From Salpingoeca rosetta (taxonomy: Eukaryota > Protista > Choanoflagellata): DNA of 64,000 bases. Both the position numbers and the translations under genes were made by a program. Below are positions 52,801 to 55,976 of the stretch, in pieces. The notes below the pieces were generated by a model. The model saw nothing but the letters and a program-made list of their open reading frames with translations, searched no databases and was not told where the DNA came from. Numbering within the stretch: position 1 is the first letter of the stretch; each line of letters starts with the position of its first letter. The DNA is taken from positions 1,113,687 to 1,177,686 of the forward strand of contig JAWQFM010000011.1 of assembly GCA_033442325.1 (NCBI GenBank), read 5' to 3'.

Positions 52801-55800
52801 CACACACACACACACATACACGTCGCGGCAATCCTCCGCAATGCATTGAGTTGACACATCATGAATTGCGCATATGCGTGCACACATGTTGATGTTCTTG
52901 CAGCCAAAGACGGTGCTTGACCCGACATGGATCAAGAGAACGCCTCCGTACCTGCAGGAAACCTCGAAGGTGTGTGGAAGACCAATTTGGGATGGGCGAT
53001 GTGTGGCAAGAGTGCCTTCCTACTGTCCTGCATCAGGTCGTCATGCACTTCGCAGCTGCTCGCCCTTGCACACAAACGCACGCACACTCTCGCTCACTCG
53101 CAACCGCCCCCCACCACACACACACACACACGTCCACTTTGCCGTGCCGTCAGCTGTTGCATCGAATGGTGAAGAGGCAGTTGTGCCGCCGACACAGGGA
53201 TGCCGTCACACGGAACCCAGCCAGGCACAGGGCACTCGTGCTCAAGCTTCTCGCAAATGAGGTCCACACACGCACGCACACCTGCACTCACACACACACA
53301 CACGCACACGCACACGCACACGCACACCTGCACTCACACACACCTGCACTCTCACACGCACGCACACACACGTTGTCCCGTCGCCGCGACAAATGCCTTT
53401 GTTGTCACTCTGCATTCACACTTCTCACACCTGTTGTTGTTGTTGCTGTTGTTGCTGTTGCTGTTGTTGTTGCTACTGCTGTTCAGATGTTCAACACGAA
53501 GAAGCTGCTGTACCCCATGTCTGTTGCAGAGCCGTTTGCCACAGACCGCATGCAGCCGTCCCCGTTTGCGCAGCACCCGAAGCACAGCACCGCTGCCAGA
53601 ATCCTCCAGCGACACGCACCGGTGCGGAACCCCGCTGCTGCTGCTGCTGCTGCTGTTGTTTCTTGTGTTTGCATTGTTTGTCATACCCCCTTGTGCTTCC
53701 ATATGCTTCAAACTCTCAAGACCGCGTGTACGGTCGAGCGCACACATGTACGGTCACTCACTCACTCACTCACTCACTCACTCACTCACGCACTCACTCA
53801 CGCACTCGCGAAACCGACACCAACTGCGCCCGTGTCCGCTGCAGAACGACCAAGTGCGGTACAGCATCAACGTCGGCAAGTTTGACCGCAGATCGTTCAA
53901 GACGCGCGAGTATGTGCTCGTCGTCACCACCAGCAGCGTCTTCATCCTCTACCCGGAATCTCTCAAGCTCAATGTCCAGCTCAACTTTGCACACATCCTC
54001 GTGAGTACTGCTCGCTTTCGGTTGTTGGTATTTTGATTCCTGCGGTGGTGGTTGTGATTGTGGTTGTGGTGGTGGTGGTGGCGCTGTGTGTTTGTCAGTG
54101 TGCTTCTGTTTGCTATCACGCCTCCACACTACTTATCCCCCATCTGAACATGACCGCGCTGCGCTGCGCATGATGATGACAGGGCATCAGCGTGAGCAAC
54201 AAGTATGACGGCGTCTTTGTGCTCCACACTGCACCTGACACCCCCCACAACAAGGTATTCGCTTGAAACAATGCGTGGCTCGTGAACGAAACAAACTGCC
54301 CGTTGAACGATCGAAAAATGAGACGCCAACAAACCGACATACCACACGCGTGCATGCGCGTTTGCTTTTGTATTCAACTCACCCGTGATTTGATTCGTTT
54401 TGTGCGTGCTTCTTGAAGGGTGATTGGATCTTCCACACTCCTTATGTAATCGAGGCTGTTACACAGATTGCATACGTTGCAAACAAGGCGAAGGACGTAC
54501 GTGCGCGCGTGTGTCTGTGTGTGTGCGTCTGTGTCTGCATCTGTGTCTGTGTCTGTGTCTGTGCTTGCGCAAGTGTGCTTTTCTCTGTGTTTCTCCTTCT
54601 CTCCTTTTCTCTTTCTTACCCTGTCTCTTTCTGTCTGACACGTCCGCCAACACTGTGCACTCCTCCATTGACAGGTGAAGGTGCAAGGGATGATCGCCTT
54701 TGAGCGCAGGAATCACAGCCGCGGCGAAATTGTGTTTGCGGTGGACGAGACGGCATCGGGTTTCAGGCGGAACAAGCAGCGGCAGCTGGAGGTAGGTGGG
54801 GAACGTGCGATTGGGGCGTTTGGGGGGGGGGGGCGGTTGGTGGCTGATTTGTGCTGTGTACAACCTTAGCATCCTCACACACACACACACACACACACAC
54901 ACACACACACACACACACACACACACACACACGCACGCACGCACGCACTCACTCACTCACTCACACACTCACTCACTCACTCACTCACTCACTCACTCAC
55001 TCACTCACTCACTCACTCACTCACTCACTCACTCACACTCACTCACTCACACTCATTCACTGACTCACTCACTGTCGCCAGGTGTGTGCGCCTGCGAAAC
55101 CGGTGCCGGAGCACTACCGCCGCTTCCGGGCGTTTGTCGATGCGCAATCGCGCGGCAACAGCGACGTCGTGCCGCCGTCTGTAGAGGACGCTCGCAAACG
55201 ACACAGGAAGAAGGAGCAGCAACAGCAGCAGTCACGAACGCGCGGACAACACAAGGATCAGCAGCACCAGCAGTGGCTTCATCAACAACGAGAGCTGTCA
55301 CGCGTCCGCTTGCAATCGCAGCCAACGGTGCGATGCGTGCGCCTGTGCAAATGAACTGTTCTGATGTTTGTTTCTGCTTCCCTATGTCTGTTTCGTTCTT
55401 TCCCTTGTGTTCTTCTTTTTCTTCCCTTTTTCCCCTTTCATGCGCGTATCCATCCTGTTCACACGCTCGTGTGTCATCACGTGTTTGCCTCACGCTCCTC
55501 CCCTCCATCCATACAGGTGCAAGTTGACATGGGGTCGCACGTGTACGGCGAGATTTCGGAGCCAGTTGCCGCGCACGACAGCCACCTCTACGGCGAAATC
55601 CAAGACCCGGTCGGCCCAGGTCAGCGCCAACGCCAACAGCAACAGCAGCAACAGACGAAACGGTTGTCGCTGGGCCCCTCGTCGTCCAACCCCTTTGGCG
55701 AGCCTGTTGGTCAGTTCCAACAACAGCAACAGCAGCGACAAGGCGCTGGGCTGAGGCTCACGTTCACGCCACATCACGTGTACGGTGAGATTGCCGAACC

Positions 55801-55976
55801 GACAACGGCATCGGGCACTGCTGCCACGTCGTCATCAACAGACCACATTTACGGTGACGCAGACTTTGGCGGCGTACAAGCAGCGTCACCGCAGTCTGTG
55901 TACAGCCAAGTCGATCAGCCGCAGCAGGACGTGTACGACACCGTGCAGGCCGTCGTCACACCGGCACAGCGCAACG
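46876..55976 (+). CDS. Class I myosin, Myo1c/Myo1h-like (motor, IQ motifs, TH1) with candidate Tyr-motif C-terminal extension; 3' end uncertain (stop at 55354 if unspliced, or 56389)
   Basis: [31 protein letters not shown]-loop, [57 protein letters not shown]-like IQTRFRGY and [10 protein letters not shown]1 [11 protein letters not shown]. Switch-II region lies in the gap at 49511-49610. Confidence 0.93.
49511..49610. other. Assembly gap (N run) hiding myosin motor exons
   Basis: Ns. Motor-domain sequence between YYGR and NEKLQQ is missing, so the true gap is longer than shown. Confidence 1.
50160..50250. repeat. 10-bp tandem repeat (ATATCCACAC) in a myosin intron
   Basis: Direct reading. 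Confidence 0.9.

Follow-up and report, generated by a model that had tools for sequence, protein, structure and literature searches.

A Myo1c-like class I myosin of Salpingoeca rosetta with a spliced post-TH1 tail carrying six candidate phosphotyrosine motifs

The vertebrate class I myosin Myo1c, known from solved structures of its motor (4byf, 9cfu) and its tail (4r8g), is made up of a short N-terminus, a motor, an IQ lever, and a TH1 domain, and the protein stops at the end of TH1. We analyzed a gene of the choanoflagellate Salpingoeca rosetta whose product has the same layout, and whose TH1 domain ends where the chain of 4r8g ends, but which does not stop there. The gene lies on the + strand of a 64,000-nucleotide stretch of DNA (assembly GCA_033442325.1, contig JAWQFM010000011.1, forward-strand positions 1,113,687 to 1,177,686), which we call the window; all positions below are counted from its first letter. 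A previous model-made reading of the same DNA (the sequence-only reading) had described a Myo1c-like myosin I with six Src-type tyrosine motifs beyond TH1. Here we show that this is a single expressed Myo1c-type gene, whose product continues for at least ~240 residues past TH1: a basic, Q-rich stretch modeled as a helix and then a stretch with six tyrosines and no predicted fold.

Extensions past TH1 are known from the long-tailed myosins I (Myo1e/f and the amoeboid and fungal proteins, with a TH1-TH2-SH3 tail). In these proteins the low-complexity sequence after TH1 is also a protein-docking region, but TH2 is rich in Pro, Gly, and Ala and is read by SH3 domains or followed by one, whereas the extension in S. 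rosetta is Q-rich, carries tyrosine motifs, and follows a motor that is nearer to Myo1c. Repeated and disordered motifs of the phosphotyrosine (pTyr or pY) type pY-x-x-I are known from another choanoflagellate protein, RTKB2 of Monosiga brevicollis. The disordered RM2 repeats in its C-terminal tail (Tyr-Glu-Ala-Ile) are phosphorylated by MbSrc1 and bound by the SH2 domain of MbSrc1, and pYEEI competes (PMC3584944). The carrier in that case is an autophosphorylating receptor tyrosine kinase, whereas the carrier here is a motor without a kinase domain, and we found no sequence relation between the tail and the RM2 repeats. Motors that are wired into pTyr signaling have also been described in choanoflagellates: a myosin III-like group has fusions to SH2 and tyrosine phosphatase domains (PMC3942036). 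Those myosins belong to another class and carry domains that read or erase the mark, whereas the sites considered here would be written. Finally, vertebrate Myo1f is phosphorylated by Fyn, and its interaction with 3BP2 is independent of phosphorylation and does not involve SH2 (PMC6521229). Src-family phosphorylation of a class I myosin is therefore known already; what appears to be new in this sequence is an array of candidate pTyr docking motifs after TH1. We found no class I myosin described in the literature in which consensus pTyr docking sites are arrayed in that position.

RNA evidence for the tail and the tyrosine motifs

We aligned RNA data to positions 53700-56420 of the window, passing over microsatellite stretches. 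The tail is encoded by two exons, a Q-rich exon and an exon with the tyrosine motifs (the Tyr exon; coordinates are in Table 1). In a stranded run of raw reads (X21), the depth on the gene's strand was 40-80 in the exons and 0 in the intron between them (55338-55428). The joint 55327^55517 was crossed by 33 stranded reads (with 20 start places) and by 13 reads with short overhangs, reading AAGTTGACATGGGG. A 3,126-nt contig from a 2024 study (X9) joins 53844-54000, 54183-54254, 54419-54496, 54675-54791, 55082-55327, and 55517-55976, so that the Q-rich exon is spliced to both of its neighbors, and contigs from a 2011 study (X13) carry the same joints. One run that behaved like DNA (X1) was collinear with the window across both introns. 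In an index search, runs of five studies contained 0.64-0.76 of the sampled words, which is the share expected for the two exons minus the 189-nt intron; of these runs, we aligned X9 and X13. Because the junction reads and the contigs both link 55327 to 55517, the Tyr exon belongs to the myosin mRNA. It is constitutively included and was expressed in every RNA data set that we aligned. (Apparent joints at 55634-55741 that go back or skip 62 nucleotides were discarded as reads or contigs from other CAG-repeat loci.)

These data bear out the sequence-only reading in its account of the frame, which was said to run on from VCAPAK through the Q-rich exon and across a phase-0 GT-AG intron into the Tyr exon. 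That reading had also proposed a short isoform that would arise by retention of this intron. The stop codon that it relied on is present, as a retained intron would bring in an in-frame TGA at 55352-54, but retention itself is unsupported, with an intron depth of 0 against 40-80 in the exons of the one raw-read run. Since the intron is removed constitutively, any switching of the tail would have to act through phosphorylation and not through splicing. The remaining possibility that had been raised, namely that the Tyr exon is part of a separate gene starting from the ATG at 55529 or that the myosin transcript stops after 55354, is refuted by the RNA. There is an open frame from this ATG to 56389, but the junction reads and contigs tie the exon to the myosin, no reads lie in the intron, there is no read-through past 55978 (a depth of 2.4 versus 58), and no recorded protein of 84-268 amino acids has this sequence.

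The Tyr exon encodes two poly-Q runs, a single NPF (55688-55696, between the two groups of motifs), and the six tyrosine motifs. Three of the six lie within the longer pattern H[VL]YGEIx[ED]P. The residue before the tyrosine is I, L, or V in every case, the residue at +3 is I or V in five of the six, and all of them fit [ILV]-Y-x-x-[IVA]. When we shuffled the residues of the exon 200,000 times, no shuffle placed I, L, or V before all six tyrosines, and none contained three matches to [ILV]YGE[ILVF]. Similarly, the pattern [ILV]YG[ED][ILVFA] occurs just four times among the 127,996 codons of the window in six frames, and all four are within the Tyr exon. The encoded stretch also has no predicted fold: AlphaFold gave a mean pLDDT (predicted local distance difference test) of 54 and a pTM (predicted template modeling score) of 0.14, with nearly no secondary structure, and the fraction of order-promoting residues is 0.20-0.23 across the tail (0.23 in the Tyr exon) versus 0.42 in TH1. 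Pfam has no family that matches either exon of the tail. The evidence supports the view that the tyrosine motifs are real and non-random and that they lie in a region without a predicted fold, in line with the six motifs in disordered spacers that had been noticed at the outset.

The three long copies of the motif are 69-85% identical as DNA. Across the 11 residues of the YGEI copies, eight are kept, while three to five of the 11 codons differ synonymously. Synonymous divergence with a retained peptide implies that these copies are not a fresh duplication; to judge from the codons, it is the peptide rather than the DNA that is preserved.

The other exon of the tail encodes 82 residues. It begins with the final residues of TH1 (VCAPAKP, 55082-55102), and a basic cluster (RKRHRKK, 55193-55213) is followed by the Q-rich stretch. 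A single-sequence AlphaFold model, which is weak evidence, has helices at residues 10-23 and 32-78 of this exon, with a mean pLDDT of 78 and values of up to 95. The model suggests that the long helix is the only structured element proposed after TH1. If it forms, it could pair with another helix, act as a stiff spacer, serve as a polybasic patch at the membrane, or work as a signal resembling those for nuclear import. In the model, the Q-rich stretch (55175-55315) is one helix of about 47 residues, with RKRHRKK before it. Also within this exon, position 55239 is T instead of C in every read and contig from the runs of 2022-2026, which changes ACG (Thr) to ATG (Met), but not in the 2011 contig; this is likely a difference between a laboratory line and the reference.

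A candidate phosphotyrosine docking tail and its alternatives

The optimal substrate peptide of Src is EEIYGEF, and the SH2 domains of the Src family prefer pYEEI or, more generally, pY-x-x-I. The VYGEI, LYGEI, and IYGDA sites of the tail fit the optimal substrate of Src-family kinases and, if they were phosphorylated, would fit the preference of Src-family SH2 domains as well. More broadly, the Tyr exon has the consensus context for Src and SH2 (an aliphatic residue at -1, small or acidic residues at +1 and +2, and a hydrophobic residue at +3), and has it in sequence with no predicted fold. We consider a pTyr docking tail on a membrane-bound motor to be the best single explanation for these features. 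We hold it tentatively, with a little less than even confidence, and on the strength of the motifs and of analogy to the systems described above. In this explanation, TH1 would tether the motor to acidic membrane, where a membrane-anchored kinase similar to Src would phosphorylate the VYGEI, LYGEI, and IYGDA sites. In these sites, position -1 is aliphatic, +1 is Gly, and +2 is acidic, and +3 is Ile in three of the four. The resulting pY-x-x-I/V sites would then draw SH2 proteins to the interface of membrane and actin at which the motor operates, or, alternatively, the recruited proteins might change the motor's partners or its location.

A more ambitious form of this proposal is that the myosin is a multi-site pTyr scaffold. 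The tandem YGEI sites, together with the sites that resemble YDxV or an immunoreceptor tyrosine-based inhibitory motif, would recruit several types of SH2 protein (Src-type kinases, adaptors, and perhaps the SH2-bearing myosins), and the Q-rich helix might pair two motors. We consider this form possible but somewhat unlikely. Two likenesses of short motifs, and of nothing longer, touch on it. DVYDTV resembles the pYDxV that is favored by the SH2 domain of Nck, as in the sites of nephrin or Tir, and tandem YxxI motifs with a spacing of 11 residues resemble a loosely defined immunoreceptor tyrosine-based activation motif (ITAM). With 11 residues between the YGEIs, the strict ITAM spacing of 6-8 does not apply, and only the loose definition (6-12) fits. 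If the scaffold form is true, then this myosin would combine force generation and pTyr docking in a fusion older than animals, in which the job falls to receptors such as nephrin or ITAM chains. More generally, use of the tyrosines would make this the first known class I myosin to serve as a written pTyr docking site, beyond being a motor or a binder of lipids, and would offer a genetically testable link from the large tyrosine-kinase and SH2 toolkit of the relatives of animals to the actin-membrane machinery in the feeding collar. Without such use, this is another lineage-specific disordered tail.

Several points weigh against a docking tail. Phosphorylation of the tyrosines and binding by SH2 domains are plausible, and we infer both from consensus motifs alone; short motifs within low-complexity sequence are weak predictors, and the motifs are compatible with unphosphorylated sorting signals of the YxxPhi type as well (Phi, a bulky hydrophobic residue). 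We also assume that the host organism has the Src and SH2 partners, and the C-terminal part of the protein past 55976 could alter the picture. The five motif strings and the word "myosin" are absent from the supplements of an S. rosetta kinase paper that lacks a phosphoproteome (PMC11984502). In addition, none of our searches found an orthologous tail that would point to conservation. A word search of proteins of 84-268 amino acids found no relative of the tail, and neither did HMMER across 1.84 billion cluster representatives. (The sole match from HMMER was P0001, a repeat protein of 615 amino acids with E = 9e-5, which we dropped because it is of low complexity and unrelated to myosins.) A scan of metagenome contigs gave 600 matches to the pattern, of which none were confirmed. 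The Tyr exon did not match itself in these searches, so none of the cluster representatives is a public protein with this exon: either the public proteome lacks the exon, or the protein is filed under the representative of another cluster.

The absence of relatives in cluster representatives, in the word search, and in metagenome contigs is what would be expected if the tail were a lineage-specific, low-complexity extension with no site-specific function. The motifs would then derive from old internal duplications within a Q-rich spacer, and their likeness to Src and SH2 sites would be a coincidence. The poly-Q runs, the disorder-like composition, and the repeat copies that are still recognizable in the DNA are all consistent with this. 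However, a coincidence does not readily account for an aliphatic residue before all six tyrosines, including the three that are not in YGEI, or for copies that diverged synonymously and kept eight of 11 residues, or for an exon that is constitutive and whose expression shows in each RNA data set that we aligned. We consider a functionless extension unlikely. That the motifs act without being phosphorylated is, in our view, quite unlikely: the tail would be an endocytic adaptor, with YGEI, YSQV, and YDTV as YxxPhi signals for mu subunits of the AP-2 type and the NPF as a ligand for EH-domain proteins, and it would link a membrane-bound myosin I to sites of endocytosis or phagocytosis, in the way that TH2 and SH3 do for the long-tailed myosins I. 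In yeast, amoebae, and animals, class I myosins do act at sites of endocytosis, and an adaptor of this kind agrees with the bulky aliphatic residue at +3 of five of the six tyrosines, with the location of the NPF between the two groups of motifs, and with the lack of a predicted fold. But YxxPhi leaves unexplained why position -1 is invariably aliphatic and why Gly-Glu occupies +1 and +2, as well as the conserved H at -2 and [ED]P at +5 and +6; a single NPF is fairly frequent by chance; and the usual readers of YxxPhi act on the tails of transmembrane cargo.

It is also improbable, more so than the adaptor, that the protein is a long-tailed myosin I of the Myo1e/f type, with an extension similar to TH2 and with its SH3 domain in the missing 3' exon or exons. 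The extension does occupy the position of TH2 and is rich in Q, G, P, A, and S, and at least 473 nt of transcript past 55978 would leave room for an SH3 domain. On the other side, the motor, converter, and TH1 pieces favor Myo1c over the other solved myosins I, the lever has several IQ-like motifs, proline makes up just 17 of 235 residues, and the next exon, as read from the RNA overhangs, opens with 11 residues that do not resemble the beginning of an SH3 domain. If the protein were of this type nonetheless, an array of tyrosines would still be unusual for TH2, and a long tail of this sort would be compatible with pTyr docking.

Class I myosin domains upstream of the tail

The tail belongs to a multi-exon gene that runs from an ATG at 46876 to past 55976. 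We compared the translated pieces of its exons to Pfam and to solved structures. Three exon pieces match Myosin_head, at profile positions 2-68, 163-254, and 604-670 of 679 (E = 6e-20, 7e-25, and 4e-12 for the three pieces), and all three score above the cut-off of 33.3 bits. The solved structure that the N-terminal piece of the motor matches best is Myo1c (88.6 bits, versus 73.4 for Myo1b); the same holds for the converter piece (87.7 bits versus 64.6), and Myo1b and Myo1c are tied for one piece from the middle of the motor. Myo1c is thus the top solved match for two of the three motor pieces, or for three of four pieces if TH1 is counted. Part of the motor is concealed by an assembly gap of 100 Ns (49511-49610), which lies just 5' of the exon with NEKLQQLF.

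The lever region includes two adjoining IQ-like motifs (52030-52221) and a further basic, IQ-like stretch (52467-52574); its match to the Pfam IQ family, made with a fragment, is under the cut-off. Within the TH1 exons (up to 53620, then 53844-54000, 54183-54254, 54419-54496, and 54675-54791), the junction 54496^54675 was resolved. Myosin_TH1 is matched at positions 36-72 and 93-110 (E = 3e-5 and 0.07), with scores that are below the whole-domain cut-off because the queries were exon fragments. In PDB, the TH1 piece matches only the tail of Myo1c (residues 189-235 of the 335 in 4r8g), and the last TH1 exon by itself (39 amino acids) had no match in PDB. About 100 residues follow the aligned piece in 4r8g. 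In S. rosetta, 91 residues follow it up to RQLE, at which the last TH1 exon closes (GAG, to 54791) before a GT donor from 54792, and about eight more (VCAPAKP) are in the next exon, past a 290-nt intron with its acceptor AG at 55080-81. As these counts agree, TH1 ends just inside the exon that begins at 55082, and the rest of the protein is extra.

Table 1. Features of the S. rosetta myosin gene and of the adjoining (CA)n tract, in window positions
Feature	Position	Strand	Evidence or remark
Myosin motor domain exons	46876..51568	+	Pfam Myosin_head pieces; best solved match Myo1c (N-terminal and converter pieces)
IQ / lever region	52030..52574	+	Pfam IQ match (E 0.005) and sequence reading
TH1 domain exons	53487..54791	+	RNA joints, contig pieces, Pfam Myosin_TH1, PDB 4r8g
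Intron, GT..AG, with (CA)n and (CACT)n microsatellites	54792..55081	+	Sequence; the 2024 contig passes from 54789 directly to 55080
Q-rich exon, phase 0	55082..55327	+	RNA splicing to both neighbors
Phase-0 intron, GT..AG, 189 nt	55328..55516	+	Spliced out in all RNA seen
Tyr-motif exon, 153 codons + 1 base	55517..55976	+	Sequence; RNA depth 58-80 on the gene's strand
Tandem YGEI copies 1 and 2	55535-55564, 55580-55609	+	Two Tyr 15 residues apart; 11 residues between the YGEIs
Third YGEI copy	55772..55801	+	Sequence
DHIYGDADF; SVYSQV; DVYDTV	55841-55867; 55895-55912; 55928-55945	+	Sequence
Start of next intron	55977..56117	+	Depth drop; reads running on
(CA)n tract, probable assembly loss	56118..56168	.	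Point at which the two convergent genes are cut off at their 3' ends

The product has the motor domain of a class I myosin and a TH1 domain after its IQ motifs, and the matches support the earlier identification of a Myo1c-like protein, with the nearest solved relatives as its basis. Myosin Ic/h is defined by a tail of IQ and TH1 only, whereas the RNA adds at least 235 codons after TH1 and the transcript runs on. The protein may instead belong to subclass Ik of the unicellular holozoans (PMC3942036).

The missing 3' end

The sequence-only reading had let the tail end at 55976. This proved to be wrong: 55976 is the end of an exon, with a splice donor that is used (GT at 55977-78), and not the end of the gene or the protein. 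RNA depth falls from 58 to 2.4 past 55978, where 50 reads (with an agreement of 1.0) and two contigs go on with GGGCGGACCTCAAGCGGGCACTGGCCGGCG. The contig from the 2024 study extends for 473 nt past 55978. In the known phase, the continuation translates as G-G-R-T-S-S-G-H-W-P-A. A search of both strands of the window for its first 30 letters and for two sub-patterns, with up to three mismatches, found nothing relevant, and these letters had no exact match in metagenome contigs.

A convergent gene on the - strand, which is similar to Nudix/Dcp2, approaches the myosin from the right. Its stop codon is about 10 nt to the right of the (CA)n tract, and its reads (with the first mate on the + strand) cover 56157-56420, with none to the left of the tract. 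As both of the convergent genes lose their 3' ends at a single microsatellite, a collapse of the assembly at this point is the simplest explanation. This collapse probably removed the last exon or exons of the myosin along with the 3' untranslated regions of both genes. Regardless of whether the tyrosines have a function, the gene model is cut at the microsatellite, and annotation of the myosin and of the Nudix-like gene from this assembly lacks their true 3' ends.

Just to the right of the tract, RNA from the - strand gene differs from the reference at 56242, 56304, 56364, 56388, 56392, and 56394. In addition, 29 of 42 reads have a G inserted after 56308, which joins two frames of this gene's last exon and gives it an end of RAYDSVC. 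The reference at 56242-56394 seems to have a frameshift error or to reflect a strain difference, and six mismatches and one inserted G within a span of ~150 nt would fit with poor local assembly quality.

The introns and spacers in this part of the window (54870-55060, 56460-56770, and 57370-57550) are crowded with long microsatellites of the types (CA)n, (CACT)n, (GT)n, and (CAGA)n. The convergent gene is itself interrupted by an assembly gap of 187 Ns (56882-57068), and an open reading frame on the - strand (57561-58082), which contains a stretch resembling a Nudix box, is part of the same gene.

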